From contig NW_027270908.1 in NCBI RefSeq assembly GCF_040938485.1, positions 62,001-126,000 on the forward strand: a stretch of DNA of 64,000 bases, written 5' to 3'. Position 1 is the stretch's first letter. Each line of letters begins with the position of its first letter. Source of the stretch: Diadema antillarum. Taxonomy: Eukaryota. The position numbers and the translations under genes were made by a program. A model generated the notes under the pieces. The model was not told the DNA's origin and made no database searches. It worked only from the letters and a program-made list of their open reading frames with translations. Positions 28,836-50,998 of the stretch are shown here, piece by piece.

Positions 28836-31800
28836 CACACATAGGGCCTACTGTGCATGTGAGATATCAAATGTTCTGTCATCTTTTCTTTTTTGAGAAA
28901 CATTACTATATTATTTTAATGGGCGACAAATGTGGCTGATGTAGATGTGTGAATTACTGTCTTTTAAATGTTTAATACCTTGTGCCAAACCTTTGATTTG
29001 TCTACACGACATTGGTTTTTAATTGCACCTTTTTCATGGGATCATTTTAGTAAAAAAAAAAAAGACAACAACCTACCACAACATCCCAAGTCTTAAATAA
29101 ACAAACCTCTAAATATGCTAATGTTTCCTTTACCAGCCAGTGAGTGGCATTAAACTTGTGCTGGAGCATGCCTTTACCAATGTGAATAGCTTGCTTGCTT
29201 TTCTGGATCATGTAAAGAAATTGATATCAAGCACAAAACAAATCTAAGTTGACTGGGGAAGCATCATCTTTCTAATCACATAGGGTCCTTCCAAATACGG
29301 TCCCTAGCTATTAACAGGCTCACTCAATACACTGGTCATTTGTCACACAGAACACCAATACAACAAACTACCACTCACTATCACAATGTAAATGATTTTT
29401 CTTCCCTCTGATATGATACAATTTTAATCTAACAAAGCAATTTTACTGGCCCTGGAGGACTTTGTTTGTAGGAGAGTCCTTTGCAACAAACCTGTGACAT
29501 ATCATAAGTTTCAAATACATTTTATTTTTATTTTCCTCATCTTGCACACTAATATTTATTAAGTGACTGTATATCTGTACTCTGTTCAGTGTGTCTCCTA
29601 AAGATAAACCAGAACTTTTGTTTGTGCTTTGTTATGGTCAATCTGCAAATGGTGGATAGTAAGTTATAATTAGAATATACATGTACTTACAGTTCAAATG
29701 GTCTTAATCTGTTAAAAAGGCCTTTTTGGAAAAATAATACTTTTCAAATGAGAAATGAAAGCTGCATAAGAATATGATTGCTGTTTAGCATTGATCTTTA
29801 ATGCACATCTGTTCATCACAAATTATTTACAACATCAATGGAAAGATGAAATGATGATGTGGTACAAGTACCCTGGTACAAGCTGTAGTCACAATTGGAC
29901 ACTTATTACAAGAAGGGGGATGACAAATCCTCCATTTTCCTTTCGTACTAACAGCCCTCATTTCGACAGCTGGGGAGTGGATGTCAAACAGAAAATATGT
30001 CACTTCCAAATGCAGAATAACGTTTTTAAAAATCCATAAATAAAAAGCTAAAGAAAATTATTTCAAGTGGAAGTTAAAATCTTAAAAACATGAAAATACC
30101 TTGATGCATTTGCGTGAAATGCATTGTCACAATGAACAACAGAAATATTTCTGCTTACATTGTAGCTCTGCCATAGCTGGAGGTAGTTTGAACCTATAAT
30201 TTACACATTCTGTCTTTAAGACACTAAATGCTACAATATGCAACTTGGGTCACCACTAGACGAAGGTAGAAAGATGGAACTGTAATGCACTTGTGGTGTA
30301 GAGTTATCAGCATCCCGAAATGTGTTTCTATGAGTGACTGCATATGTGCCCCATTGAATTATGACTGCAGGTCAATGTTCACGATATGTGTATTGGTTGG
30401 TAATTTTCAAACATTTTCTTCCGGCACAAATCATTTACTCTTCACCAACTTCATTTCAAAGTCATGACCAGTGCAGATTAAATTAATTGAAGTTATCAGC
30501 AAGCAGGCAAAAGAGCAAGCATAACAGGCAAAAAATGGAGAGCATGGGGGGGGGGGGGGGGGCAAGGGAGAAAGCAGGTAAAAATATAAACATATAAAAA
30601 CAAAAAGATTGTTAAAATGAGACACAGATGTGGAGAAAAGTCAACATCTTTGCCTCCGTTGATTCAGGTGTACGAATATCAGTATGTTACTGACTCATAC
30701 ACATAGCCTATCCTGGCTGCAATAACCTCAATAAAATCATATTTCCTCATTGATCTGTCGACAGTCAACAAGCAAGTAACAAAACACGCGGATGACAACA
30801 GTAAAAACACCACAGCTGCAAAGGAAGCAAGTGAGCAAGCATAGTGACCAGAAAAGCAAACCAGCAATGCTGTTAAAAAAAGAAAATAAAATAAAACTGC
30901 ACACCAATCAAAAATTGTTCCATCAAAGCAAAAGGGAGGAGCAACAAAATTTACCATCTTTTTGACATTCTGAATACATCAATGATACATTTCTGGGTTC
31001 ATACACTCAGTTTGGAGAAATGTTATTGCTTAATTGTTACCCAACCATAACATTTGATGTTCCAAATCAAACGTATGTTCCTCCTTGTTACTCGTCTAGC
31101 AGCACACAATTTACCAAAGTTCACAAGCCATCAACCTTTTGAAGATTTAACATATAACCTTTTACAAAGTGTATACCTAGTTGATGCACATTCTCACTGA
31201 AGTAAACTGCTGTACATATTTTCATCCATATTCATCTCATCATTTTTAATGCAGAACTTGTCCGCCCAACACTTCATGATCAATATGTGTTACACAAATC
31301 TTGCCTCACCATCGACATAAATTTCTTGCATGATACCCAATGAAAAACTGACCCATTAAATCTCCTGTTATCAAACCCAAGAGAACAAATTTTGCTCTAG
31401 TGCATTGTAAGAATCTCCACAAGAGACTTTTCAAAACCCTGTACCGTTCCTAAAAAAATTAAATTCACCAAAGTGACCACTACCCATTTTAATCCAATGC
31501 ACCTCATCATCCATGTGTCTTCATCATTTGGAGGTTGACACATCTTAATACTGTTTATCTTGAGCATATTCCACATTATCGAGCAAAAGATGGCAGATGA
31601 AATCTTCACATTCATGAATACAACCAAACTTCATTTCTTCATCTGAGAAACCTATCTTGTAAGGTTGTAGCTCTAATTGAATAAGGCTGCAATAGGGACA
31701 CAGAATGCCAATAGAACATCAATGACTTAAAATTTGTCTCATGAACTTGGCATGATGCATATACATCCATGTATTTGGAAGCAATTGGTCCTTTAGAACA

Positions 31801-32077
31801 AAGCAGTAATTTTTCTCTCAACTAAAAGATAGTCTTGCAGTTTCTGTCCTTAGATGGGAATGACAATCTCAGGACGGCATGGTGACACTAAATTTACAAC
31901 AACAAAATTACAGGAAGAAATATGAAAATAGTCGTTCTCATTCCTTGATCTTGCGTCAAATATCTGCAAACAAAGTTGGAACCCTAGGCAGGCCTTTCAA
32001 CAAGAGCTACGACCTTTGTAAAGATTTCTTAACAATTCTTTGATTGTTGCTCCACCAACAGTAGACACTGTAAAACC

Positions 32078-35000
32078 TCATTCTCCCTTGAATTTCGGCT
32101 TTCTCTTTTCCTTGAAAGCAATGAGACCCTCCATGCGATCCTGAGTCGGAATGACCTGCAGAAAGACACGAGTATTTGAGAGAGACAAAGAACAAAGAAA
32201 GACAAAAAACTATTAAAAAATAATGAATTACTATTTTCAGATTTTGAAGATGTATGTAAATGTGTTTCAAAATGAATTTACAGTAGGTATTAATGACATT
32301 TTCATTTTTTAAAAACAATATTCACACTTTGTAAGCACTATGTGCTTTTGAGAAAGATAATCACATATTTTACAAGTGAAAATCGCCCACTGCAAATCTC
32401 ACAACAGAAATACTGGTAATAATAGATAGCAACGATTCAGTGGATTCATTCATGTTGAAACTTGCCAAAAGTGGAGGGGGTGCATTGACAACTCACTGAA
32501 ATCAAGATATCAGACTACAAACATTGCACACACATTACACTGAAGAGATGACAGATACACCTGTACTGTACAAATCCCAAGCTAAACCCTCACTTAGCTA
32601 CATCCATGCATGTATACTCACACACTATAGAATGTGTAACATGTGCTCTGCACACTACAAAATGCCCTACTCCTGCATCCTAACAATCACCACACAATAT
32701 TGTTCTGAGACATATAAATTCACAGTGCAGACTGCACAAAACACAACTACTGGGACCATAGGTTACTATATTTCTATCACTCTACACTTTGTCCACTTAA
32801 CTCTTTATGTGCCACGGTCGCATGTCCGACTCAGTCGACGGCGTGCCAACTTCGCATATTCTGCTCAACAAACAAAGCCGCCAAGACCGATCGATAAACC
32901 GCTAATTACTGCTAATCCCGCGGCACAATGAAAACGTTTCTCGTGCTTTTGTTCCTCTCATATATACGGCCTGCATTCTATGTGGTGATCGACTATCGAG
33001 CGATGTTCCAAACTAGATTTGCTCGTACATTCTAAGTTTTTGTCACGGTTTTATGTGCAAAAGTCATGCCTTTACAGTAATGTAGCATTTGGTTATTCAA
33101 AAGAAAAATGGAAAATAGGGTCGTCATACAATTTATATCGAAACAAAGCTTGGTATTCCTCTTTAACTTTGCCTACTATTATGCCCATCTAAACAGAAAT
33201 TTGTAGAAGTTATACAAATTGGAAAAAACAGAATTCTTTCTCAAAGCATGACTACCTTCATGTCTCAGAATAACGTGGCACACAGGGGGTTTCCGCCATG
33301 GCACATAAAGAGTTAACAAAGCAAAGAATTTTACTTTCTGACAATCAAATCGGGACCCATCTTTCATTTCAACATAGACCTGGCAATGGTGAATAACCAT
33401 CACAGCACTAGCTTGCTTAATTAAATCAAAAAAGAAGAAAAATGAAAGAAAGAACAGAGGAAAGGGAGAAAGACAAGAAGGATGGAAAAAAGAAAGGATG
33501 ACAGATAGTAAAGCCCTACCTGAGCATAGTAGGCTTCTTCAAATGCCAGTCCTGTTGCCAGATCGACCTGTATATAGGGAGAAATGATGAAGACATGAAC
33601 ATGGTCAGGACTGACGCAGGTAATGTTTGTTAAAATATATGATCTTCTTTGTTTGTCATGATGGCAAACCAGTATTAATTGGCAGTACAGCAAGGCATAT
33701 GATCATTAGCTAATCATGTCTGGCTTTCACATCTGTATATGATTCTGACAAAAGTGGAAAAAAACATCAACTTGTGGTCAGAAATCATACTCCCTGTCAC
33801 AGAAAAGAGATAGGATCATCTGAAAATGAAATTCAAGGTTGACAAAAATGGAAACTGATGTTTACTTGGTCATTTTATCATATGGTTTTCTTTGCCATTA
33901 CACAATGACTTATTATGAAATGAACACATTTTCTTAAACTTGTTGAAGACTACATTTAGTCCCAAGTTTACTCAGGCAGGTGTCAATGGGAAATGCATGT
34001 TGTATCAAAATCAGCTCATCAGTGATTATTCTTCACAAATCTGAAGTGCATGGTCATACATGCTACTAGCATTTTTTGTATTGTGTAAATATGAAGCTAG
34101 GAAGAAAACAACAGTTGAAAGTAATAGCTTTATGCTTCAATAAGTGAACAAATTGAATTAACTGGCCTTGTCATAATCAATATTCCCAAAGACAGAAGCG
34201 ATTCAAGTTTGTGAATGGCTTATTACAAATATATTTGTTCATAGATATCTTGATAGTGTAAACATTAATCATTTTTAAAACTCCTGCATGCACAAAAAGT
34301 TTCATCACAACATGGGCCAAGCACCATTTCTGACAATTTAAAGCAAGTTCATCATCAAATAGAGCAAAATAAAATCTTTCAGGTGATACCTCACCTCAGT
34401 GGCAAATTTTTTTTTAGCAGCTTTAAATATCTCAACTTAACGAGAATGGAGGTAGCTCATTTTGCGATAAAATTCTTCATACAGTGCACTCCCGTTATAA
34501 CGAAATTCCGGTTACAACGAAGTAAAAATTAGGGCTGCAACATTATCCACTCTATGTATTTTTATTGTTTATTTGTTCGGTTATAACAAAATTTCGATAT
34601 AACAAAAGAAAACTGCCAGCCCCGTGGACTTCGTTTTAATGGGAGTTCACTGTATCATTAAAGCCCACCGCACACTACACGATTTTGCCCCGATTCACCG
34701 GTCTTAAGACCTTAAGACTAGAAGTGTGACGTCACAGTCTTGCCATTTTCTAGTCGTACGACTGGGTCTTAGCGCCAGTCGTAGAGATTTGACATGTTGA
34801 ATTTCTACCGACTGGTCATGGGCTTTCAGCCATTCACAATGCAGTAAAATGCAAGCGCACGCATGTGCGCACTGCGCGCGCTTTACAGTCGGGTCGTATA
34901 GTGTGCGGTGTCCGGTCGTACGACTGGTCTTAAGACCCAGCTTGGCTTAAGACTTTAAGACCAGTCTGATCGTGTAGTGTGCGGTGGCCTTAAGTCTACA

Positions 35001-37090
35001 AAAGATGACAACATTATGACATGAGGCAACACAATTCCAATTAAGCTTTTTCCCCGGGTTGGACACAGAATTTGTGAATACCTCATTTCCTTTGTTTACA
35101 GCTTTCTTCACCATTCTCAAGGCAATTGGACCCTGGAAAAAGACAAAAACGAGGAAAGATACAAAAAGAAATAATTTTATCTATGCAAATCTATATTTCT
35201 TTAATCCAACTTTCTGTTGGTGACACGAGGTGTGAAGTGCAACTTAAGTAATGACAGTCTTACTAAAGGGCCAACCTGTAACTGTTTTAACTTTACATAA
35301 AATTGCACTGGCAAGCAGTCTGTTTCTTTATTTCTGTGCAGATTAAAAGATTTGCTTCTGTATTAAAACCTCTCGCAACATATCCATGGCAGACTTGAGC
35401 ATTCATTCACCGGCTTTACCAGTACTCTGAATCAGGGCACACACACTTTGTATTCCGAAAGGAGAATGGCAACGAAAAATGCATGTTACACAATGTAAAT
35501 GTGGTGACAACACCAGAAAGGACTACCCATAAAAGTGACCACAAGATAGAAAGCAAATCATCACATATAGGTCGGAGAGTACTCATACGATTCCACAGAA
35601 ACCAGACCAACAAAGAAAGATGCAGACAGCTGCATGCAGGGAAACTGTTCTGATATTAGGCAAAAACATGGATTGTGTGTGTGCTGGTGTGTTACACTTA
35701 TTAATTTGTCTTCATGCAGGTGCATCAGTGCTTGTGTATGTTGGCATGCATGGATGTGTTTGTGTGTATGCAAGTAGGGAGGGGTGTATGGATGTGTGCA
35801 TTGTATTCTTCTCAGATATCAGTCTTTGAAAGCCAATTCGTAGCCGTACCTGTGTTGCTATCTCTCGGGCCAGGGCAAGGGACCGGGTGTAGGCAGCTTC
35901 CTTGCTGTCGTCCTGGTCAACGCAGTGGTTGACCAGTCCAATGCGGGCTGCTTCCTGTCCGTCCACCACTCGCCCAGTGAACATGAGCTCCTTGGCTACT
36001 GATGGACCAACCAATCTGGGTAGCCTCTGCGTCCCACCTTCACAAAGATAAAACCACAAAAGATATATTATAAATGCACTGTCTTCTCATTTCCTTTCTC
36101 CTTTATGTTTTTCTCCTATTTTGGATCGCCACTTCATCTTCTTTAAAAAAAAAATATATATATATACAGGGGAAACTCGGTATAACGAACACTGCTATAA
36201 CGAGATATCGGTTATAACGAGGACATTTTCTCGGTCCCAAATTTCCTTCCACACAAATCAATGTAAAATGCTACTCTTATAGCGAGATCGGCTATAACGA
36301 AATAACTGCTATAACGAGATAAATTTTGTGACTTCCAAACAAAGAAAAACATAGTCAATCAAACCTGCTATAGCGAGGTAAAGCAAAATGCCTTCGGTAA
36401 AGCTTTACTTCGCCTGTGCTATCATCTTCCGAGATTGTAAAGCTTGATGCGCCCAAAACTGTCTTGTACACACATAATCATTTTCTTCAGTGCACTCCAG
36501 CTAGCACTGCATGTTGTACGTGTAAGTGTGTGTGTGCGCGCACACTGATACATGCAGAAAATGTGGTGGGACGGCCATATGTATACATGACATCATCGTG
36601 ACGTTTAGCAGGTGTGAGGCAATCTGATGCTGTGATTGGCCTCCTACGTAGGGAATTCCCCATCTTCACACACACGCAGTCATAATGTACATACAGAATG
36701 TGTCACATACACACACAGCATTGTGCAGACCATATTCAAGCTTTCCACGCAACACACACTCATACGATAACCACATATCAATCCACAGACGATCTTGATA
36801 CAATCGCAAGCTATATAAATTTACAAAGTCAAACATCTACAATTAATAAGGAACACATTCTTGATATTGGATATTTTTGGCGAAAAACATCTTCTTACCC
36901 ATAAAGGTGAGTTATTCCCTCACACACAATATCAAGTTATCAGTATTGATTGAAATATGATGGGTAGTCCCACATGTGCAAATTAATGTCTTTATGTTAT
37001 GCCTTCTTTTATGCCTACTGATATAACGAGATATCGGCTATAACGAGGAAAATGACTCGGTCCCGACCATCTCGTTATATCGAGTTTCCA

Positions 37091-37126
<36 letters not shown>

Positions 37127-40100
37127 TCATTATAATGAATCAATGCTGCCCCCCACCCCCCGGACAATTACATTGTAACCCCGGCTAAATACTGTTTAGT
37201 GACAAGGTTAGAATACAGATTACAGGTAAGTTTAGGTTTGGGTTAGGGTTAGGATTCGGTTAAGGATTAAGATTAGGGTTAGGGGAAGGGGAAGGGTTCG
37301 GGGTAATTCCAATGGGGTAATTGCCCTAGACCCCATACAGCTCCTGTGCTCACCAAACCCAATGTATGATACACTACATACTTTCAGCAGAAGTACTAAA
37401 CACAAAGTGCACATAAACATAATGTTTATCTCACTATGGATATTTAATAAAGGTTGTAGGTGATCTGTATACCCCACGCGGAGCCTGCTCCCGTGTGGGA
37501 TTATACTGTTTCCAATTGAAGGTTCCTTCAGTTTTTAGGAATACACCCTTATGTGAGATATGCACTCAAAAAATTGAGGTTGATATCTGAATGCAAAATA
37601 TCAGCTTATTCTCATATCTCAATATAATGTTGGTTGGTTCACTGAAACACACAAGAAATGATGAAAATTGGCGATGCCCTGGTGGGTTGAAATTCCTCTG
37701 AGCTCTACAGGTCTGTGTGGCAAAATAAATCCACACCATTTGTTTGCTGTTTTGTTGACAATTATCATAACAAAATCATTTCTGCTTTTAAAAGATTTGG
37801 TCCTTGAGGCACTATTCACTCTACACCTGAGATGTATATATGCATTTATGTCATTTTCACATCCAAACAATGACGATACACCTCAGATGTATATCTCCAT
37901 TCATGTCATTTTCACATCCAAACCATGAAATTTTACTACATATTCACATTTCTTTTTTCTTCTTCTTCTCTTTTTTTTTTTTTGGGGGGGGGGGAGGGGT
38001 GATTTCAACAACTTAAAGTGATTTCAGAGTCACTCATGATAATCATTCACATACCTCCTCCTGGAATAATAGCGAGTTTAGCTTCTACAAGTCCCATTTT
38101 GGCACTTGATGCTGCAAAGGAGAAACAAAACAATTGATTCGCTTCAATTTGCTGCCAGTGAAAATTGAACATGCTAATGAATAAAGAAACTGACAAATGG
38201 GACTACACACTACAAAGGTATCAGTAAGATGTCTAGGTACAGCCAACAAACTGTGCATTCACAGAGACACATAGGAAGAAACTAATTTTCATACTATCCA
38301 AACACTATTGGTCAAATGGCAAGTTCATTTCCAGAACCAACACACAAGGTATCTTGGTATAAATACAGCACACACCGAGATACTGTGTTCTCTGATTCAT
38401 ATCATGCATTAAATGCTACTCCTGCAATGCGTCAAACCTCCCCCCCCCCCAAAAAAAAAAGAATTAATTAATTCTAGTGCNNNNNNNNNNNNNNNNNNNN
38501 NNNNNNNNNNNNNNNNNNNNNNNNNNNNNNNNNNNNNNNNNNNNNNNNNNNNNNNNNNNNNNNNNNNNNNNNNNNNNNNNNNNNNNNNNNNNNNNNNNNN
38601 NNNNNNNNNNNNNNNNNNNNNNNNNNNNNNNNNNNNNNNNNCTTTCAAAGGCCTATTTTGTGATATTGGTGTGTATAGATACATGCTGTCAAAAGCCTCT
38701 AGAGCAAAAGTTTCTGTCAGCAAGATAAGTTCATTTGTTATGAAATACTACAGACCTACACATGGAATATTTTGCAGTCTGGAAGTTTTGTTTGTGTGTA
38801 CATGTGTGTGTTTTTCTTTTCAATTTAATGCACCACTGAATTTGCATGACAATGACATAGACGAATGGAGGAGACAAAGGACAACATACAAGAATGCCTT
38901 TACCCTTGAAATCACTAACAAGCAAGTTAACTGAAAGCAATCCAGCATGACAAATTAATCACCTAAAATTTCCACAGCACAATACAAACATCAGGGTCAT
39001 TTTACTCATTAGCAACATTAGCACAGCTCACTGGTACAAACTAGCATGCATTATGCTCATGATTGTGGTTTCCTTGGATGAAATGAGTTGAGCATTTCAG
39101 ACTTTGACATAAGGCTATACTGAATATGAAATATAATATTTACACAATATTCACTATGGCAACACCAATTTCATTTCTTATAAATTTCATTTATTCATTA
39201 TTTTTTTCTGATCTTCAACTAACAAGGCTATTTCAGAGTGCTAAAACATTGGCAAAGTGAGCACATGACCAGCCAAGTATGAACAAAAAAAAAATAATAT
39301 CCTGGCCTATATGTAAAACAGGAAACAAGAAAGTATAATGATAGTACATCTCAGCTCTAAAGGAACAATACAAGGATAAAAATTCTGAAATATGGTGTCG
39401 ATATAAGCATGGTCATTAATTTCAAAACTCTGGAGAAGACAAAAAAAATGTTGAAATGAAATAAGGTGTAATAACAAAGTTGCAAATGTAGCTCTATCAA
39501 ATCCGCAATGAGCAAGAAAAAGATATGTACATATAGAGGTGGAAAGGTTGGTATTCTATAAGTGAGCACATCAGAAGTCTGCAGCAGAGGACTGGAGCAA
39601 TCTGAAGTCAGAGTCCTGGTTACCTTAAAATGGATAGAATGGCAGTAGTAAAGAAAGATAAAGGTGTGCTGGGTCTACATTCTGGCAAAAGCACAAGCAC
39701 AATCAGCATAGCAAACAAAACCTATCAAGGAAACAGCATGATATCATCAAGCCAGCCCAGGAGAAAACATGCATGTTTGTTTGTCATTGGATTAATGGAC
39801 TGTCTCACCAGCTACCATCATGTCACATGACAGGGCCATCTCTAGGCCGCCGCCCACGGCAACGCCGTCCAGAGCCGCTATGGTAGGCATGGGCAGGTCA
39901 CCAAACTCGAGGATGGTCTTGCGCAATCGTGCGACAAACGGACCAACTTCTTCCTGTGGCATCTTTATCCGTTCCTTCAGGTCGGCTCCTGGGGGAACGT
40001 AAAAACACAGTCGGGAGACGGAGATAACACATCAGTGCTATCAACTGCGAAAGCGAAACTGCAAACAACTTACAGGCGACTCTCATGTCGCAGCTTAGTG

Positions 40101-43100
40101 CCATCTCCATTCCCCCGCCCACGGCGACCCCGTCGATGGCAGCTATGGTCGGCATGGGCAAGTCACCCAGATCCAGAATCAGCTGGCGCCCTCTACTGAC
40201 GGCTGGGCCCACCTCGTGCTCCTTCATCATGATACGCTCTTTCAAATCCGCACCTAAAGTGTCGGCACATTGGATCACAATATACGTTCCTTGGCATTTC
40301 AGGACTACTGTAAAAGTGGAAATTTTCGCGGTGTTGAAATTTTCGTGCATTTCGCGCAACCAGAAACTAGCGTGAAAATAAAAGCACGCGAATACTTTTG
40401 CTTGCCATATGTTTCAGTAGTTTATGTCTTGATTCTGCGGAATTAAAAACACGCGAAACTCTTCTTAGCCGGCTGAGCGCAAAAAGTTAATCGCCGGAAA
40501 ATGTCCACTTTTACAGTATCTACTTCTCAAAGCAAATTTCTGCATACCTGTACTACTTACATTGCCCTTTAGAGAGCTAAATATGGGAACTAGTGACACA
40601 TATAATTATAATTGTCCATGTCAATGGTTTTACATATCAACATACTGATCAGAGCCCTTCTTCCAAGCTCAGCAGATCAAAAATGATAATGATGGACTAT
40701 TATCAAAATAATCTGAAGAACCATGATATCTAATTTTGGTAAAAAATGGGAACATTTGCAGAAAAACATGCTCTATCATTTCAGAAAAAAACTTCAAAAT
40801 ATACTATCTAACTTTACTTAACTAAAGACATATTGTACTAATGCACAAGTCATCAGACTCACTTATTATGGCTTTGAGGTTGAGTAATATAAAATGTCAT
40901 CTCAAATGAAAGAAGACTACAATGTATTTAATGAAAGCAAAGGATGAATTCATGGATCCAAACCTGCACAGAAAATTCCAGGGACTTCACTTCTGATGAC
41001 AACTGCTCTGACATTGTTATCAAACTTTACCGACATCACCGCCTCTTCCATCTAGAATGTAAAGACAATTTCAATTTCAATTTATTTTCAGCTTTCATAT
41101 GAAAATGTCACATAATACAAAAACTACAAAGTCTTACAAATTAGGTGAAATGTGCTGGGGCTGTATCCTTTTGTTATTTAGACTAGCAGCCAACAAACAG
41201 AATCGAAAATCACGACTTTTTCTTACAATATCTAATGTTTTAAATAGGCATAGAATATTTCCCAAAGTTTGTTGAGAGTAAAAGCAACTTTTGTACAACC
41301 CAAATGGCATCAAGAAGTCTGATTATTGCACTGACAGCTTGTACAGTAAAAGTTACTATCATTTTCATTTGGAAATTGCTATAGCAACAGGGCCCAGCAG
41401 GTCTCAAAACTCAAATAGAGTGTATATTGTATGCTGAGAATTGAGGTGTTCCTCCTTTATTTTGATTTTTTGCTGAATGTGTAAAAAACAAACAAACAAA
41501 CAAACAAACAAACAAACAAACAAACAAAGGGTCCAGCAGGTCTCAAAACTCATAAAGAAGGTATACTTTATGCTTGGAGGATCGAGTTGTTCCTCTTTTA
41601 TTTTGATTTCTTGCCAAATATGTAAAAAACAAACAAAGAGTGTACAGGTATCTGTAGAATCTAAGCCATATACATAAAGACATTTACAAAGATAATTTCT
41701 TATTCTGATGCACCAGATACTGGTATATCTTTATATACGTGTAGCTGGCACATGTATTGCAAATTTCATGATCTGGATTTGTCTTTCATCCCTTCCTTCA
41801 CTGGAATGATGAACTTTTGTCACGGGTGTTTTATTTGAGAGAAAATATTTCATAAATACAAATATCAAAGGATACTTACTAGTCTTAGAAGGTTTTTGCT
41901 GATTGCATTCTTGGCTTCAGGTCTGTTCAGTCCAAGGACAACAATTTCTGTTGTTAGAAAAAAAAAGCAAAATTATTTTTATCAACAAACTGCTATGGGT
42001 GCATTATGAAATTCCTCACTTTTTCTCACAAATTTTGAAGCAACTAATAGTGTAATGCCCTATGATGCAGTATTCCTGTGTGTTTGTAAATGACACATTC
42101 AAGGTGGAAGGATACTTGGCGATTGTGAAAAACAATATCTAGGGTCTTACTGCAAGTAAATGTTGTACAAGGTCACTTCTGCAAATATTGTTATGGTTCA
42201 CTTTCCCACTGTCCGGTGATGATATACCGGTACATATCTACTTTAAATGGTATACAGTGCAATTCCAATATAACAAACATGGTTTTAACAAAATTCCGGT
42301 TACAACGCAATAAGAATCAGGTCCAACATTATCCTTTCTATGTTTTTTATTGTTTATTTGTTTGGTTACAACGAAATTTCAATATGATGAAAGAAAATTA
42401 CCGGTCCAAAGGACTTCTTTACAACAGGAGTCCACTGTAATTTGAAATGTAGTATGCCTACATATACATTGTGCGAAATTTTAGTGAAGGGTAAACAGAA
42501 TTTTTGTCTACAAGAGAAATAGATACAGATTTACAATTCTTGTAACCATAAAATCTTCAATCTGAACATACAATGTAGACCATTTGTGTGTGCCCGTCTC
42601 AAACCCACAAAAAGTTGCAGATTAGGGTTCTCAATTATGGACCAAAATGGCCATATGGGTTGACCGATTCAAACTTTTAATGTTTGTCTTGCATGGGAGG
42701 GTAATCCCTTCTCTACCTTTTATCAAAATTTGGCAACAGAGAAAAAAAAAAGGAAATTCAGGTATTTGCAGACAGTTTTTCTGGACCATTTTTTAATCTT
42801 TTTTTTTTTTACAGGCGCTGCTTCGCTGCATTTTTCACTGATACTTCCGCACAGCACGCCTGAGTGACCATATCTTTAAATCCTCTTTTCTCCTTTTTGT
42901 ATGAAACTGCATCTCCTAACTCTCTAGTCTTACACAGACATCTCATCCGGTCAATGGATTTGAAATTTGTGCACAAACCGGTGATGTGTGCGCATGCGCT
43001 GGCAGTCAATTCAGTGTAGCTCTCCCAGGTTCCTCTCGACCGGTTCACATTAAGTCATCAATTCGAACAGAAAGGGACGTTTGGCAGAACCAAACGTTGC

Positions 43101-46100
43101 ATGTTACCTGTTGTCAACACTTTAACTTCACCTGTAAGTCTTCAAATTGAAGAAATTTTTCCATTTTAAGTTGATATTTATCCGCGATACTATCCCTGTC
43201 ATGATCCTGAATGCTACAGTCCGCAGCCTCATTACGCTACGTAGTATGCGTTTGGGGCTGCTGCCCAGTGCTGGTCGCATTTACATCTTTTAATTGCATT
43301 TGGACCTAGGCCTACCATAAATGACAAACTGTCCATGAGATGCCAACTTTATAGATAACAGAAGTCATATAAAACAGACAGTGTTCTAGTTGTCTAGTGA
43401 CGTGTCTGTCTATATTGTTTCTATTAAAGGAGCATAGTCCCAGTAGCGTAGAGGGCGCTGTTGATGATACTGCCGATCACCATTAGCATTGAGATACGAA
43501 GATTACCGAAGTTGAGCTGTCATCAAGAGTATTGTAAAGTGCGTAGCTGTTGCAAGTAACATTGCCTTCATTGTCTTTTCTGCGCATCGTGCAGTCTGTA
43601 GTAATGCAAGGATGCGTGCATATCAGTTCGGGAAACCCTTTCACAAGGGGGGCCCCTCCTTATATGTTGTTGTTGTTGTTGTTTTAGGTTTAATGGCAAT
43701 CAGTCATAATTTTGACTATTTTTGCCAGACTATATCATATATATATTTCCCTATAGATTAATTATCAATATTTCTTAACAAATTCAAATTCTATCATAAT
43801 ATCCATATTTGTTTTATTTCCAACCATATTTTTATTTTAATTATAAAAATTTTATTGTTTTCCTCGCTCAGTCAAAACGGCCACGTTGCCACCCTCGGTT
43901 CTGTCTTACCAACCCGGCGAAGTGCGTTTCGCAGGCTTCTCAGGCGTGCGCCCTAGGTAACTCGAGAAAGATGGTGGCGACCGTCATGCCTGAGCGCGTG
44001 GAGAACAATATTCCGATATAATCCAAATCCAAATATATTCATTTTATTTATCTTTTTTTTTAAATATGTATGTAGCGAACATTTGTGGGCAGAATCAAGA
44101 GTGCAAATGATGAAGATAGGTGCACTGGTGGTAGGCCTATACCTTCAACATATTCTAATGTATAATAAAACATCTACACTAATCTTCCAAATACTAATAT
44201 ACAGTAATACTTAACATACTGCGGCATATAATATAATATGCATGTGTGTATATGCCTATATACACACACATACCTACTCATGTATACATCTGAGATCGTA
44301 CAAATACACATCTTCATTATAAAAATACTACATTATAATCTCTAAGGTTCGTCAAACTTATCCTTGACTCAAACGATTTGTCCTGTACACAAATGTGATT
44401 ATGGAATTTTGAATATTTCGATTTTGAGACGCTAAAAGTTTAATGATATCAGAGTCACGATTTGTGTTGGTTTCTGCCATTAACATGGCTCTTTCTATTG
44501 TATATTTCGGGCATTCTATTAGAAAATGTTTAACTGTTTCAGGAGTGGGGCAATAGGGGCAGTTTCCTGTGGGGTGTTTTGCTATTTTTGCTAAATCATA
44601 GTTAAGGCCGAGACAGCCCATTCTCAACCTGTGTATAATCATTTCACGTTGTCTGGAAAGATGACATGTGAATGGCTGAAAATTTACAGATGATTGGATG
44701 GTTTTTAGAAAGGAGGTTGAGTTATTCCACTTACTTTGCCATTCTGTTTTATACTTAGTTACGAGGACTGACTTTATCTCTGAAAAACTAAGGTCGTTGT
44801 AGATTTCGATAGGTTTTGTCAAGGCTTCTTTAGCTCGGGAATCAGCGGCTTCATTGCCGTGAATTCCACAGTGTGACGGAATCCATTCGAGTGAGATGTC
44901 CGTGCCTTTATGTTCTAGACGAGTGACAATTGTCCTGATTTCAGTGATGAAGTTGTCGTCGTATGGTTGTGATTTGATGGCTTTAAGTGAGCTCAGCGAA
45001 TCGCTGAATATGACAGCTCCTGTGTGGAGGTCTAATTGCTCAAGCCAGTTTAGGGCGAGGATGATTGCAGATAGTTCTGCTCGATATGATGATGTGTGAT
45101 CACGTAATCTTTTGCATTGGGAATAACGAAGTGATGGCACGTAAAAGGCGGCAGCTGAATTGCCTTCATTAGGCAGTTTGGATCCATCAGTAAATATGTG
45201 AAGTTGATGTTTCCATTTGGAATTGATCAGTTCTAGGCTCCATTGTTTTTGAATTAAGGGGTTGTCGTCTTTATTGAGCCACTCAGTTAGCTCTAATGAG
45301 ATTTTGATTTCGCTTAAGTGCCAGAAGGGGATTACTGGGGGAGTGAGAGGTTCGAGTTTTGTTGTGATATTTGCGCTTTGAATTCTAAGTCCGAAAGGTT
45401 TACGTGATTTTTTCTCTTTCATATACTCGTATTGCCAGCAGTTTTTTGTGCTTTGTGATACCGGATGGTTTGCGATTCTCGTCAAAGACGCATGGTATTT
45501 TGTAGTCAGCATCTTTCTTCTGATGTATAAGGGGAGTTCTCCCATTTCTACTTGAAGGGATTCTAGAGATGTGGCGGGAGCTGCACCAGCACATACTCGA
45601 AGAGCCTGATATTGGATGGAATCCAGTGGTTTTTTTGAGCTTTCTGAGGCGGACTCATAAGCTTCACATCCATAGTCGAGAAGAGACCTGATCAGTGCTC
45701 TGTACACCATAAGAAGGGTTTTAGAAAAGTTACCCCATGTAGTTCCCGCCAGACTCTTTAAAATATTTATTTTGGGTTTACAACGATCAACAACATCATT
45801 TATGTGTGTATTCCATGTTAATTTTTGATCAAAAGTGAGACCTAAAAATTTCTGACTTTGTTGATATTTCACTACATTATCATTTATTTTTATCTCCGGT
45901 TTTTCAAGTTTAATAGAGTTTGTGAAAATTACTGGGGTTGTCTTTCTGTCGGATAATCTGAAGCCCCATTCGCTGAACCAGGAGTTCAATTTTCCAAGAT
46001 ATTCATTGATTTTTTTGCCAATGAACTTTACATTTTTCCCTGATTTCCAGAGTACGCAGTCATCAGCGTACATTGACATATTTACAGCGGGATCAGTGGG

Positions 46101-49100
46101 TATATCATACATCATGAGGTTGAAAAGAAGGGGACTGAGTATACTTCCTTGTGGAAGACCATTGCTGATGGTTTGGGGACTAGAATTTGTGTTTTGGATC
46201 CGCACTTGAATTGATCGATTCGTCAGGAAGTTATGTAAAAAGCGAACCACGTTCCCTTTTAATCCTATACGTCTTAGTTTGAATATAAGTCCATCAATCC
46301 AAAGAGAATCAAATGCTTTTTCGATGTCGAGGAATACAGCTAATGTATGCTCCTTATTTCCTAGACTTTTTTGAATGCTATTTTCTAAGTTGACTATGTT
46401 GTCTGTAGTACTACGTCCCTTCCTGAAGCCACTTTGGAGTGCTGGAATTAGATTGTGTTTGTCTGAGTACCACTGGAGACGAGATTTTATCATACGTTCC
46501 ATGATTTTAATAAAGCAGGAAGTTAAGGCGATTGGACGATACGAGGAGACATTTTGGGGGTCTTTGTTTTGTTTTGCTATCGGGGTGAGTATAGAGTGCT
46601 TGCAGGCTTTGGGGACGTGGCCAGTATTCCAGATTTGGTTTATGAGTGAAAGCATGGTTGTTCGTGCTGAAGGGGGCAATTTGCTGTAGACAAGATAGTT
46701 GATTTGATCCTGTCCTGGGGCGGATGTTTTTCCACAATCCAGAGATTTCGACATTTCGTTCATGGAGAAATCTTCATTAAGTACTGAAGGATATTTTTCT
46801 AGTTCGTCATGTCGGTTTCTCTCTAGAACGGTATCGTAGAGGGCGGTATTTGGTTTCTTTTTTCCGATATTTGCAAAAAATTGCGCAAAAACTTCAGCCT
46901 TCTCTTCATCTGTTATTACTTCAGTGTTATTTACAAATAACGCAGGTATATTCCTAGTAAATTTAAAAGAAACATTATTCATTGTTTTTATGGTTTTCCA
47001 TATTTCACTGGTAGGGGTAAAGCGGTTCAGTTTGGCGCAGTAGTTTTCCCAGTACTGACGTTTGGCTTGTCTAATAACTTTTTGAGCTTGTGCCTTCTTT
47101 ATTTTATAATCATTTAGGTATTGCTGAGACATATATTTTGCTGCTCTGTTCTTTGCTTTATTTCTTTCTCTCACTTTTTCAGAGCATTGCTTGTTCCACC
47201 AGGGAACAGCTGGACGGTCTTTTTTTTTCTTTTGAGGGACTGATTTTGAGATAATTTTTGTCAAATTTGTAATAAAATTCTCATAAAAAGTTTCCGTGTC
47301 CTCGTGCTGAATGTCAGCGGACAACAAGGTTTCAGATAATTCTGCAAAAGTATTCCAATCTGCGTTTTTAAAGTGATAACGACTTAATCGATCTTCTTGA
47401 TTTACTTCAACACTGCAAGAGAAATTCTTAATTGTTATAGCCAATGGAAAATGGTCGCTACTGAAGCGATCGGTAAGGACAGACCAGTTGCTTTTATTTG
47501 CTATGTTTGGGCTTGCCATGGTAAGGTCAAGGCATGACAGTTTGCCGGAGTATGGATCTAACCTTGTGCCTGCGCCGTCATTTAGCAGGACCAGGTGTTG
47601 GTCGTTGATAAATTCCTCGACGAGGTGACCATTGCGATTTGTGTGCTCGCTTCCCCACAGGGTGTTGTGACTGTTAAAGACATCAAGAATTATGACATTT
47701 TTAGTATCATTTCGATTGCTTCTGATTGACTGCGAAAGTGCCTCAATTGTGTTTTGATCAATCTTTTGACAGGGGTTATAGAAATTTATTACAGTCAAAC
47801 GGGAAGATTTTATATGGAGAGTTATTGTTTGGATTTCGAGTTCTGCATGAGAGGTTGGCGAGTTGAAAGGGATAGTGTTATGCACGTAGATGGCACACCC
47901 GCCTCGGGGGCCACTCTTCCTATTTCGTGGGAAGCATATATAGTTTGGTATTTGCATAATGTTTTCTTCCGAAAACCAAGTTTCTTGGATGCATATGATG
48001 TGAAAAGGGTTCTTTTCACGTGACTGTACAAATTTCTTTAGCTCATCTCCGTGGTTCTGGAGGCCTTGTGCATTCCACTGAAGTATAGAAAGGAATGCCA
48101 TAAGGACGTACATGTTATGTGCGAATATATGCATTGATACGGATGATATCAACTTTTGGGATGCTTAGTATTCGCTCTGCTGCTTCTGCTGTTGTGGCAA
48201 TCAGTTCAGATATGGACATTTCTTGTCTGAGTGACTGTATCATGCAGATCAGGAATGCTAAAAGCGACTCGGTTGTGGCAGTCAAGACGAAATTTGGGCG
48301 GTTAGTCTCTCCGGCGTTATTTCTTTTTGGATTTGGCGGATCTCTTCCTAACTCCCTGGGCGGATCAACTTTGCTAGTTTGGGTTGTTTCTGGAGTCGTC
48401 GCCATTCTTTCAATGTTTTGAGTTTGTTCTCTATGGCCTATTCTGTTCTTTATTGGGGGGTCTGCGCTTTTGTCTGTGGGAGCGGTCATGGTTTGCTGGG
48501 TTTCAGTGATTTTGGTTGGCTCTGCAGTGTTGTCTTTTCTTTCGTTGAAGACTTTTGTGGCCTGTGCATAACTTATTTTGTTTTCAACCCGGATGATTTG
48601 GATTTGCTTGGCCTTTTTTATTTCAGTGCACCCGTTGTATGCCGCGGAATGTTTCTCGTGGCATCTGATGCACTTGGGGTTTCTTTCTGTGTACAGTCTT
48701 GAAAGGAGTGTGGCCCTCCACAGCGGACACATCTTTGTTTCGAGCGACAGTTTGTTGCTACATGTCCAAGTGACTGGCAATTGTAACATCGAACGATGGG
48801 AGGGATGTATTGTTTGACCGTGAACTGTTCGTAACCAAGAAGTATGGCGGCTGGGAGGTTGGGGGTCTTGAATGTTAATACGAGTGATTTTGTGGGAGTG
48901 TTTTCTGTTTTCCCTCTCCTCAGTATGCGCTCCACTTTAGAGACTTTCTGTTTACTCAAGGCATCTAATAAGTCAGTTTCAGTGAGGTCGGTGGATATAC
49001 CACACCACTGATGACACCTTTGCTAGTGATTTCTTTTTCGAGCACTTTAACGGCTACACTGCCAATTTCGGTCATTTGTGAAAGAGACTGTAGCTGATGG

Positions 49101-50998
49101 AGGTTGGCACATTTGATAAGAATACCAGTTCTGGTTCTCTTTACGTATTCTACGGGGGTGTTTCCGGCATGTTTTTGGATGGCCTTTGCAACAACAAGAG
49201 GGTTTAAGGTGTGGAGATTTTTCCTTTCTACTGGGGTGAAATGGATAGTGAGGTTTGGTGGAGTCCGTGGGGGTGGGTTTTCAGTTTCAGACATGTCACT
49301 GGCGGTGGTATAATAACCTGTTGGGGTTTCATTAGAGTTTACGCTGCCTTGTCTGCGGCGTTTACCTCTACGTCTAAAGTGGTCTACTGTTTTGAAGTTG
49401 TCATCTTCCATATTTCCAGATGCATCCGCATCGGAATCACGGTTGAATTCCGGCGCAGAAAGCGGAGGCAGCTTGAGCGCCATATGGCGGGAATTTTAAA
49501 TGAACGGATTAGCGTGCTCTATACATAAGATGGGTTAGTGGTGGTCTGATATGAAGAAAGGAAAAAGCCCACGAATGTGCGCTTACCTTGGTTCTTTTCC
49601 TAGGGAAATCAACGTTTTCCTAGTATTCAGCTATCTATCCGGTTATATTTCAGTTGCCATCCCTGTTTTCAAAAGAATAAAGAGAGATTGGAGAAATTTT
49701 CAAGTTGGTAGCTATGGAAACTGGAGAAGCTAAGAGTAAGCGTCCATGCGTCCATGCGTCCGGTCTCAGCTCGTCAGATCAGTAACCCGTAAGTAACCCG
49801 TCCCCCTTATAAGTAACCCCGTCCCCCTTATAAGTAACCCCCGGGGCACCCCTTATAAGGAGTCTCCACGCTTTTTTGCAATGCAACGCGATAATGAAAG
49901 GACTGCGGCAATTCGCTTGATTATGTCCATAAAGCTTCACAAGTTTCCTAGTTACTCACGAAATTTGAGCAAAATCGGTTCGAGGCATCATATCTAAAAT
50001 CATGGATTTAAATGCGATGTCAAACGACCCATGCGAATGCTGAAATGCGAGCGATTACTGGCGTGAGTGTCGCCAGGCGCGGCGGCGCGGCAATGCTTGA
50101 GTGCAGACGTGGCGACTGAGTACGGAGACTTTCGTACTCAGTCGCCACGTCTGCACTCAAGCATTACTTATATTAACGGGGACGGGGTTACTTATAAGGG
50201 GGACGGGTTACTTATAAGGAGGGGCCCCCCTTGTGAGTGGGTTTTCCGAACTGATATGTATGTGCTTGTTTAATATTATAACATCACGAAAGAAGTTTGC
50301 TAAAGCTGTCATCCCCCTCAGCTGAATCATGAGCTGAACTGTGATCCGACCACTGACTAACGTTGAATAACGTGAATCGGACTTCTTCGGACTCGGGGAA
50401 GTGGGCCAAATACAAAGCGTAAGCGCTAAAGAGGAGTCGATAGCGTAGGTCTCTATAAATTTACATGATTTAAGCATTTTGATATTAATGATAAGTAGGA
50501 AACTTGCGCCGTGCGCCCTAACACAGTCACCGGGACCATGCACATTTGAACCATGGGGGCATGAAGATGGAGCCCTATAAAATTAGTAATGCTGCAGCTA
50601 CGTTCAGTATGCATGCATCCGCATCCACGCACTGGCTGTTGTTTATTTGCACTGCACTGCTGCAGCTGCAGAGCTGTAGCGAGTACTAGTAGGCCTCCTG
50701 CAGCAAGTTACAGAGCTTCGCATGCCGCGCCGCCGCGTTCAGCCCGCTGCGCTGCTGCGCGCTAGCTGGCGCTGCATAGCAGCACAGCATACCATGATTA
50801 GAATCAATCTGTTTAAAAACTTGAAGTAAAATGTGACAAACCTCCATCGTCGAGGTAATTAACACGTAGGTCATCGGGGGATGAACTATATCTACACGTT
50901 TGAGTAAGCAGATATTGTCTCCTTACGACTGCTCGTGACTTTAGCAAACCAGAACTGGCAGAAGATCGCAGCAGGAGTTTCGCCATGTAAGTCGCCAT
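32078..50998 (-). CDS. AUH: Mitochondrial methylglutaconyl-CoA hydratase (AU-binding enoyl-CoA hydratase), 304 aa with one copy of exon 4
   Basis: Exons (minus): 50998-50842, 41947-41880, 41051-40964, [40253-40074 or 39988-39809], 38111-38055, 36037-35850, 35132-35082, 33567-33520, 32155-32078 = 915 nt. Motifs: Arg/Ser-rich transit peptide, [49 protein letters not shown]-terminal [17 protein letters not shown]. Confidence 0.93.
32801..33312. mobile_element. piggyBac-like MITE
   Basis: TTAA on both sides; TIRs CTCTTTATGTGCCA(C/T)GG. Confidence 0.8.
34482..34652. mobile_element. Tigger/pogo-like MITE
   Basis: TA flanks; TIRs CAGTGCACTCCCGTTATAACGAA / rc CAGTGAACTCCCATTAAAACGAA; related copy at 42255-42437. 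Confidence 0.75.
34662..34990. mobile_element. PIF/Harbinger-like palindromic MITE
   Basis: TIR AG(C/G)CCACCGCACACTACACGAT, TAA TSD, internally near-palindromic. Confidence 0.8.
36167..37093. mobile_element. Tigger/pogo-like non-autonomous element inserted in (TA)n
   Basis: TIRs CAG(G/T)GGAAACTCG(G/A)TATAACGA, repeated ATAACGAG subterminal motifs, (TA)n on both sides. Confidence 0.8.
37160..37333 (-). mobile_element. Second copy of the (CCCTAA)n-core dispersed repeat
   Basis: The reverse complement matches 28434-28599 and adds a sub-terminal IR GGGCAATTAC/GTAATTGTCC. Confidence 0.6.
38481..38641. other. Assembly gap (161 N) in the AUH intron after exon 4b
   Basis: Run of N. Confidence 0.99.
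39809..39988 (-). CDS. AUH: AUH exon 4b (canonical-like alternative copy)
   Basis: 180 nt, CCCAG acceptor, GTGAG donor, phase 1-1; encodes [60 protein letters not shown]. Confidence 0.88.
40074..40253 (-). CDS. AUH: AUH exon 4a (divergent alternative copy)
   Basis: 180 nt, TTTAG acceptor, GTAAGT donor, phase 1-1; encodes [60 protein letters not shown]. Confidence 0.88.
40306..40518. mobile_element. TA-flanked MITE (TACTGTAAAAGTGG family)
   Basis: Perfect 15-bp IR TACTGTAAAAGTGGA; ends about 50 nt upstream of the AUH exon 4a acceptor. Confidence 0.75.
41389..41640. repeat. Diverged tandem duplication (~140-bp period) with (AAAC)n
   Basis: GGG(C/T)CCAGCAGGTCTCAAAACTCA..GTTCCTC..TGTAAAAAACAAAC occurs twice. 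Confidence 0.7.
42255..42437. mobile_element. Tigger/pogo-like MITE, older copy of the 34482 family
   Basis: TACAGTG..CACTGTA ends; shared internal AAATTCCGGTTACAACG and TTTTATTGTTTATTTG. Confidence 0.7.
44358..48101 (-). CDS. LINE ORF2: APE endonuclease - RT - RNase H - CCHC
   Basis: [19 protein letters not shown]; [23 protein letters not shown]; [28 protein letters not shown]; CPYC..HFLIEC. The GDFN motif reads DVFN. Confidence 0.92.
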   Translation of the reverse strand: MAFLSILQWNAQGLQNHGDELKKFVQSREKNPFHIICIQETWFSEENIMQIPNYICFPRNRKSGPRGGCAIYVHNTIPFNSPTSHAELEIQTITLHIKSSRLTVINFYNPCQKIDQNTIEALSQSIRSNRNDTKNVIILDVFNSHNTLWGSEHTNRNGHLVEEFINDQHLVLLNDGAGTRLDPYSGKLSCLDLTMASPNIANKSNWSVLTDRFSSDHFPLAITIKNFSCSVEVNQEDRLSRYHFKNADWNTFAELSETLLSADIQHEDTETFYENFITNLTKIISKSVPQKKKKDRPAVPWWNKQCSEKVRERNKAKNRAAKYMSQQYLNDYKIKKAQAQKVIRQAKRQYWENYCAKLNRFTPTSEIWKTIKTMNNVSFKFTRNIPALFVNNTEVITDEEKAEVFAQFFANIGKKKPNTALYDTVLERNRHDELEKYPSVLNEDFSMNEMSKSLDCGKTSAPGQDQINYLVYSKLPPSARTTMLSLINQIWNTGHVPKACKHSILTPIAKQNKDPQNVSSYRPIALTSCFIKIMERMIKSRLQWYSDKHNLIPALQSGFRKGRSTTDNIVNLENSIQKSLGNKEHTLAVFLDIEKAFDSLWIDGLIFKLRRIGLKGNVVRFLHNFLTNRSIQVRIQNTNSSPQTISNGLPQGSILSPLLFNLMMYDIPTDPAVNMSMYADDCVLWKSGKNVKFIGKKINEYLGKLNSWFSEWGFRLSDRKTTPVIFTNSIKLEKPEIKINDNVVKYQQSQKFLGLTFDQKLTWNTHINDVVDRCKPKINILKSLAGTTWGNFSKTLLMVYRALIRSLLDYGCEAYESASESSKKPLDSIQYQALRVCAGAAPATSLESLQVEMGELPLYIRRKMLTTKYHASLTRIANHPVSQSTKNCWQYEYMKEKKSRKPFGLRIQSANITTKLEPLTPPVIPFWHLSEIKISLELTEWLNKDDNPLIQKQWSLELINSKWKHQLHIFTDGSKLPNEGNSAAAFYVPSLRYSQCKRLRDHTSSYRAELSAIILALNWLEQLDLHTGAVIFSDSLSSLKAIKSQPYDDNFITEIRTIVTRLEHKGTDISLEWIPSHCGIHGNEAADSRAKEALTKPIEIYNDLSFSEIKSVLVTKYKTEWQSKWNNSTSFLKTIQSSVNFQPFTCHLSRQREMIIHRLRMGCLGLNYDLAKIAKHPTGNCPYCPTPETVKHFLIECPKYTIERAMLMAETNTNRDSDIIKLLASQNRNIQNSIITFVYRTNRLSQG
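48115..49483 (-). pseudogene. LINE ORF1 (three zinc knuckles) with two frameshifts
   Basis: Spread over three frames. A 5-nt duplication GTGGT near 49000 and an apparent 1-nt deletion near 48680. Knuckles [42 protein letters not shown]. Confidence 0.85.
50092..50165. repeat. Perfect 33-bp inverted repeat with 8-nt loop
   Basis: AATGCTTGAGTGCAGACGTGGCGACTGAGTACG-GAGACTTT-exact reverse complement. Confidence 0.95.

Follow-up and report, generated by a model that had tools for sequence, protein, structure and literature searches.

A duplicated active-site exon in the AUH gene of sea urchins, with evidence for mutually exclusive use of its two copies

A stretch of 64,000 nucleotides from the sea urchin Diadema antillarum (contig NW_027270908.1, positions 62,001 to 126,000; hereafter the window) holds an AUH-like gene on its minus strand in which one internal exon, exon 4, occurs twice in tandem. 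This raises the question of whether the two copies, 4a and 4b, are alternatives through which a single gene encodes two versions of an active site. From open reading frames and GT/AG splice sites we derived a gene model of ten exons that includes both copies (Table 1), and proteins of 304 residues are predicted from both 3-4a-5 and 3-4b-5 splicing. The 3-4a-5 product is identical in sequence to XP_071495285.1 (P0236), the Diadema antillarum RefSeq protein named 'methylglutaconyl-CoA hydratase, mitochondrial-like'. Pfam family ECH_1 (PF00378) matched this 4a isoform with 204.5 bits and the 4b isoform of D. setosum (P0237) with 200.8 bits, at a cutoff of 27, and the best match in PDB was human AUH for each exon and for the whole structure model described below. 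On these sequence grounds we identify the gene as AUH (3-methylglutaconyl-CoA hydratase), which encodes an enzyme of leucine breakdown and a member of the crotonase or enoyl-CoA hydratase (ECH) superfamily. Our preferred reading of the locus, to which we assign a probability of about 0.72, is that an internal AUH exon was duplicated before the split between Diadematoida and Camarodonta, that both copies were kept as mutually exclusive exons, and that the 4a copy gives rise to an isoenzyme with an altered pocket.

The two copies are identical at 46/60 residues and 120/180 bases (67%), and 11 of the 14 residue differences fall within exon positions 9-29. The original prediction had given the same counts of residues and had described two 180-nt exons in the same phase with intact splice sites, all of which was borne out by the minus-strand sequence and the in-frame translations. 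Between the copies, 29 codons differ synonymously and 14 non-synonymously, with 36 of the 59 base differences at third positions; the corresponding rate of non-synonymous substitution (dN) is 0.21, and that of synonymous substitution (dS) is saturated. Both exons are entered in phase 1, so that the last base of exon 3, a G, supplies the first base of a Gly codon at the start of either exon 4. At the downstream junction the outcome differs by exon, as the last base of 4a (T) joined to the CA of exon 5 gives Ser and the last base of 4b (G) gives Ala. Each exon matched human AUH (1HZD, residues 74-132) over its full length, with 71-72 bits and an E-value of about 2e-19. The translations also confirmed that both exons keep GADLKER at their start and the GGG(M/L)E motif with its glutamate, as had been claimed. 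Exon 4b is of the canonical type, with GPFV..RLR as in human AUH and bacterial LiuC, and the earlier characterization of 4b as canonical-like and of 4a as carrying F>A and L>G holds at the level of sequence. One 17-residue stretch of 4a is invariant across five urchin species. These are real homologous exons, similar beyond chance, and the pair is not an assembly artefact, because it recurs in four other assemblies and in a second haplotig.

A survey of orthologs had been proposed together with the original prediction, and by tblastn the ordered pair, with 4a upstream, was present in D. setosum, Strongylocentrotus purpuratus and Lytechinus pictus, where the intron between the copies measures 84 nt, 93 nt and 75 nt, respectively. 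Both copies are 180 nt long, in phase 1 and bounded by AG and GT in the window and at four other urchin loci. A second D. antillarum scaffold, representing the alternative haplotype (L008), also has both exons, with 0 base changes in 4a and 3 in 4b, all at third positions. Compared with window positions 31000-43000, this scaffold is 97.7% identical over ~4 kb in which exons 2 and 3 and both copies of exon 4 lie; elsewhere in the introns of AUH the aligned parts reach only 85-92% identity. Divergence between the haplotypes is very uneven.

For 4a, dN/dS was 0.136/1.92 between Diadema and Strongylocentrotus, 0.030/0.553 between Strongylocentrotus and Lytechinus, and 0.015/0.100 between the two Diadema species. 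The same comparisons for 4b gave 0.091/0.956, 0.066/0.596 and 0.023/0.094. Across orthologous pairs of either copy, the ratio ranged from 0.05 to 0.24, a pattern of substitution which indicates that both copies are under purifying selection and that neither is decaying. In a tree of the 60-residue segments, urchin 4a formed one clade (96/90) and urchin 4b another (93/90). Because each copy forms its own clade, the phylogeny places the tandem duplication before the Diadematoida/Camarodonta split. Echinoid dating puts this split at roughly 200 million years ago or earlier.

Use of the pair ALTERNATIVELY was judged on annotation, genomes, selection, age, the outcome of co-inclusion, and reads. 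In RefSeq, equal-length isoform pairs that differ only across exon 4 are annotated for D. setosum (301/301 aa, differences within residues 110-162), S. purpuratus (XP_003723843.1 and XP_782821.1; 303/303 aa, differences within residues 111-164), L. pictus (303/303 aa, and in addition two forms truncated at the N-terminus, one for each exon) and L. variegatus (303/303 aa). For D. antillarum, RefSeq gives only the 4a form at the window locus, and a 4b form of 229 aa on the second scaffold.

Co-inclusion of the two exons would be non-productive, because the last base of 4a and the first two bases of 4b (T and GA) together form an in-frame TGA. Each of the four urchin genomes examined has TGA at this junction, as does the second haplotig. 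Translation of a 4a-4b transcript would stop after 4a, and the transcript would be expected to become a target of nonsense-mediated decay. As far as the sequence reveals, the junction stop is the sole safeguard against co-inclusion. With regard to the choice between the exons, the pyrimidine tract of the 4a acceptor is poor and the 4b acceptor is strong, which suggests a default use of 4b and a regulated use of 4a.

For a 1.4-kb stretch around the pair, no RNA-type sequencing runs were listed, and a search for runs of any type returned mostly DNA runs. Runs X5 and X6 are genomic DNA of a sister species. Runs X3 and X4 are two small runs from one study whose type is unrecorded; they are probably RNA, because their coverage is limited to exon-sized pieces and a repeat. 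The read comparison began at 38642, above a run of N at 38481-38641, with exon 5 outside the compared stretch, and the tool counted a junction as bridged where at least 31 letters lay across it. X3 yielded a 186-letter contig on 4a only (40073-40245, followed by 13 unmatched letters), and X4 a contig of 202 letters confined to 4b (39809-39991; 10 letters at one end and 9 at the other are unmatched), both extending fewer than 31 letters past any junction. Neither contig covers intron, and their agreement with the genome ends at or near the exon borders: precisely at the donor of 4b, 3 letters beyond its acceptor, and 8 letters short of the 5' end of 4a. The three extra matched letters of the X4 contig (39989-39991) read CAG; since exon 3 also ends in CAG whereas 4a ends in CCT, this contig fits a join of exon 3 to 4b.

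Mutually exclusive use of 4a and 4b, one per mRNA, is strongly supported by the RefSeq isoform pairs, the purifying selection on both copies, the in-frame TGA upon co-inclusion and the RNA-like contigs that contain a single exon, in line with what had originally been proposed from the sequence. We infer that exclusion is strict in vivo. Several observations nonetheless weigh against this picture. The X-isoforms given by RefSeq are computational gene models with transcript evidence that is not visible, and no read or contig bridged the 3-4a, 3-4b, 4a-5, 4b-5 or 4a-4b junction by at least 31 letters. In X3, the one letter past the 3' end of 4a is the genomic G, which fits intron retention or a 4a-4b join better than a 4a-5 join. 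Skipping both exons would keep the frame and leave a protein of 245 aa that has lost the active-site segment. An intron of 75-93 nt is long enough for splicing, so exclusion is not obviously steric. Finally, docking/selector pairing between the between-copy intron and the proximal flanking introns was at the level of shuffled sequences in three species (RNAduplex z -0.65 to +0.9), and no intronic blocks conserved between Diadema and camarodonts were found; such RNA pairing is an optional mechanism and no requirement for this class of exons.

What, then, would the choice of exon change in the enzyme? Homology assigns to the duplicated exon the Ala and Gly of the oxyanion hole, the first of the two catalytic Glu, the Arg in ADLKER that is typical of AUH and LiuC, and all of the alpha-3 helix. 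The second catalytic Glu lies in exon 5 and corresponds to human Glu209 (human AUH numbering Glu189/Glu209). In both 4a and 4b, we found the Ala in GADLK, the central Gly in GGG and the Glu in GGG(M/L)E, as well as the Arg of ADLKER at the position of LiuC Arg69. The first three align with Ala65, Gly110 and Glu113 of the Metallosphaera 3-hydroxypropionyl-CoA dehydratase (Ms3HPCD), which are oxyanion-hole and catalytic residues of that enzyme (PMC6048173). Splicing of 3-4b-5 would yield the canonical enzyme, and 3-4a-5 an isoenzyme with the same catalytic residues and a re-packed alpha-3 helix (F>A, L>G, A/T>L, F>L).

Across the five urchin species, the 4a and 4b sets have no residue in common at positions 11, 18, 22, 25, 28, 29 and 61, and the fixed differences (4a first) are A/F at 18, G/L at 22, L vs A/T at 25, D vs E/S at 28, L/F at 29 and S/A at 61. 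Structure modelling, another step suggested at the outset, gave an AlphaFold2 model of the 4a form with a predicted local distance difference test (pLDDT) score of 88.9, in which a helix at residues 116-134 corresponds to exon positions 12-30. In a Foldseek search this model superposed on human AUH (1HZD) with a template-modelling (TM) score of 0.96, a root-mean-square deviation of 1.2 A and 62% identity, and all 50 matches listed were structures of the crotonase-fold enoyl-CoA hydratase family, so the model has the spiral beta-beta-alpha fold of the superfamily. The i, i+4, i+7 and i+11 spacing of positions 18, 22, 25 and 29 places these four on the same face of alpha-3. This helix has 17/19 invariant columns in 4a and 13/19 in 4b, making 4a the more constrained of the two.

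Position 18 (F/A) aligns with Phe81 of Ms3HPCD, a residue that 'blocks the substrate-binding tunnel', and the alpha-3 helix together with pocket residues has been identified as a key determinant of ECH substrate specificity (PMC6048173). The F>A change would take away the aromatic ring with which homologous hydratases shut the acyl tunnel at its bottom. As a result, the acyl pocket of the 4a form most likely differs in size, which would affect the substrate range or the kinetics, and a kinetic difference between the isoforms would be expected. The swap of the substrate pocket by splicing that had been claimed is upheld in so far as the F/A site aligns with the tunnel-blocking Phe81; the L>G change turned out to be not unusual, with Gly in other animal AUHs. 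Gly at position 22 is in fact common among animal AUHs, and Ala at position 18 is also found in the bacterial homologue 3KQF and in P0264, an AUH-type protein that looks like an ordinary AUH of arthropod type. Because both residues occur in other AUH-type proteins, those of 4a alone do not prove a new substrate, and this tempers our preferred reading. On the combined evidence of alignment and model, two catalytically competent isoenzymes with different acyl pockets are most likely.

The resemblance of P0264 to 4a goes further than one residue. This Logan-derived protein of 313 aa matches Diadema exon 4a in a run of 14 identical residues and continues with Ser where the junction would lie, a stretch that reflects either convergence or a retained old state. 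We rejected it as a sign of an older duplication, as outside exon 4 the protein groups with a millipede and outside the echinoderm clade. We likewise rejected the idea that 4a mimics the paralogue ECHDC2, as fish ECHDC2 has Phe and Leu at both sites.

Of the explanations that compete with an altered pocket, the one that fares best holds that both exons are functional alternatives of the same substrate specificity, the helix serving to tune stability, hexamer assembly, RNA binding or tissue expression, in the manner of regulatory sub-functionalisation. In its favour, 4a and 4b do not differ in any catalytic or oxyanion residue or in the Arg of ADLKER, and A at 18 and G at 22 also occur in apparently single-form AUH-type proteins. 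We still consider this explanation unlikely. Of the seven fixed differences, four share a single face of alpha-3, one of them at the site homologous to Ms3HPCD Phe81, and the 4a helix is more constrained than that of 4b (17 vs 13 of 19 invariant columns). The RNA-binding lysines reported for human AUH are located in an earlier helix.

There is very little room for the view that 4a exists mainly for regulated unproductive splicing, in which the 4a-4b TGA would lower AUH output via nonsense-mediated decay. Coding constraint is not needed in a poison exon, yet 4a is open with dN/dS of 0.05-0.15, its 17-residue helix is invariant despite saturated synonymous sites, and RefSeq models the 3-4a-5 product in five species. 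What such a role could draw upon is the conservation of the junction TGA in all urchins examined, a between-copy intron of 75-93 nt that could be spliced, and the G that follows the end of 4a in the X3 contig, which is compatible with a 4a-4b join.

The idea that only one exon is ever used, the other being a pseudo-exon in decay or an artefact of the assembly or of haplotypes, is close to refuted: the RefSeq annotation of the 4a form only at the window locus and the thin read support would fit it, but both copies have intact frames and GT/AG sites in five assemblies and two haplotypes at only 67% base identity to each other, each is under strong purifying selection, and contigs of each exon occur in RNA-like runs.

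Duplication of exon 4 is not confined to urchins. In the brittle star Amphiura filiformis, exon 4 likewise forms a tandem pair, with a 53-nt intron between the copies and TGT as the junction codon, and its RefSeq isoforms X1 and X2 (310 aa) differ at 11 residues, all inside exon 4. In our tree the A. filiformis copies group together (93/36), apart from urchin 4a and 4b; a shared urchin and brittle-star origin costs 12-15 log-likelihood units and was not rejected (p 0.16). From these sequences, the brittle-star duplication is likely to have been independent of the urchin one, and its 53-nt intron may be too short to splice. Two sea stars and one crinoid have a single copy, with no relic of a second copy at tblastn E-values up to 20. 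At the A. filiformis AUH locus, the exon that corresponds to exon 6 is also repeated in part: its C-terminal half has a second, incomplete copy (L002:24514-24600) ~250 nt downstream of the full exon. This copy is 55% identical to the urchin query and open over 29 codons, and could be either a duplicated exon or a relic.

A more far-reaching scenario, which we regard as possible but rather doubtful, is that echinoids obtained a second crotonase activity from AUH. Here, the Phe-to-Ala change on alpha-3 would open the acyl tunnel, and the 4a form of this mitochondrial hydratase would accept enoyl- or dicarboxylyl-CoA substrates longer or bulkier than 3-methylglutaconyl-CoA; the brittle-star duplication would reflect convergent selection to exchange the specificity helix through splicing, and exclusion would be enforced by the junction stop in urchins and by the 53-nt intron in the brittle star.

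Isoforms of Branchiostoma lanceolatum AUH, X2 and X3 (P0160 and P0220, both 312 aa), were considered as a further case of the same phenomenon and rejected, as their differences are scattered along the whole protein. They look like a model that mixes two gene copies or haplotypes.

In the full-text literature, we found no description of alternative or mutually exclusive exons in AUH or in any enoyl-CoA hydratase. The suggestion that such isoforms were undescribed for AUH thus stands with respect to publications, although the isoforms themselves are already annotated in RefSeq. The AUH pair belongs to the well-known class of mutually exclusive homologous exons, as a member that is annotated and for which we found no publication. 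Within this class, exons 9 and 10 of pyruvate kinase PKM are mutually exclusive homologous exons in a metabolic enzyme. The alternative oxidase of the oyster Crassostrea virginica is another enzyme with a duplicated exon (PMC5589949). As in these two cases, the AUH copies are adjacent exons of equal length, same phase and common origin, apparently used one per mRNA, that swap a segment of an enzyme. They differ in that the swapped segment holds the catalytic and oxyanion-hole residues of a crotonase-fold hydratase together with its specificity helix. The AUH pair also occurs in echinoids only, and the ophiuroid has a separate one.

The Arg in ADLKER, the Glu in GGG(L/M)E and the second catalytic Glu are conserved between the urchin protein and the structures of human AUH and bacterial LiuC (1HZD, 2ZQQ, 5JBX). 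The alpha-3 Phe and Leu/Ile of AUH and LiuC are the same in urchin exon 4b, whereas exon 4a has Ala and Gly. Human AUH has a single copy of the exon, and none of the vertebrate AUH proteins compared (proteins only, not genomic loci) has 4a-type residues. Co-inclusion is sterically prevented between exons 2 and 3 of alpha-tropomyosin, and exclusion in other genes is based on the reading frame or on a stop. The urchin pair resembles systems enforced by steric block or nonsense-mediated decay in that co-inclusion is predicted to be non-productive, owing to the junction TGA; it differs in that the stop arises exactly at the exon-exon junction and not by frameshift, and a steric block is not evident at 75-93 nt. 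For Ms3HPCD (5ZAI), the helix alpha-3 and pocket residues were named as specificity determinants (PMC6048173). That study compares separate enzymes from different organisms, whereas the urchin helix versions are alternative exons of one gene.

If our preferred reading is correct, the urchin pair is a natural experiment on the specificity of crotonase-fold hydratases, with two alpha-3 versions in an otherwise identical enzyme and an F/A switch at the position that gates the acyl tunnel. It would also add a case in which a stop at the exon-exon junction polices mutual exclusion, and, with the brittle star, a probable case of one exon duplicated twice within one phylum. Expression data for urchin 'AUH' would then conceal two isoenzymes, which should be separable in the dense developmental RNA-seq series of S. 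purpuratus and Lytechinus. Knowledge of human AUH is unchanged, given the single copy of the exon there.

Table 1. Positions of the AUH-like gene and its exons in the window.
Feature	Position	Strand	Basis or sequence detail
AUH-like (3-methylglutaconyl-CoA hydratase) gene	32078..50998	(-)	open frames, GT/AG sites
Exon 1	50998-50842	(-)	gene model
Exon 2	41947-41880	(-)	gene model
Exon 3, constitutive	40964..41051	(-)	ends ...PGIFCA + G, phase 1
Exon 4a, 180 nt, variant copy	40074..40253	(-)	acceptor ...ctttag/GT, donor CCT/gtaagt
Intron between 4a and 4b, 85 nt, GT..AG	39989..40073	(-)	sequence
Exon 4b, 180 nt, canonical-type copy	39809..39988	(-)	acceptor ...cccccag/GA, donor CTG/gtgaga
Exon 5, constitutive, starts CA	38055..38111	(-)	18-residue stretch including second catalytic Glu (LVEAK)
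Exon 6	36037-35850	(-)	gene model
Exon 7	35132-35082	(-)	gene model
Exon 8	33567-33520	(-)	gene model
Exon 9, stop codon included	32155-32078	(-)	gene model

Two inserted elements were observed within introns of the gene. Intron 1 contains, in sense orientation, an intact-looking ORF2 of a non-LTR (long terminal repeat) retrotransposon, an uninterrupted open reading frame of 1264 aa (44361-48152, minus strand) with endonuclease, reverse transcriptase and RNase H domains. Upstream of it lie open frames at 48118-48789 and 48968-49483 that had no Pfam match. A second, 212-bp element is located at 40307-40520, in the intron just upstream of exon 4a, and had no Rfam match. It is missing in a genomic contig of the sister species, where the joint skips 212 bases, and its words reach depths of 1e5-1e6 in DNA runs; for these two reasons, it is a very high-copy short repeat that was recently inserted.

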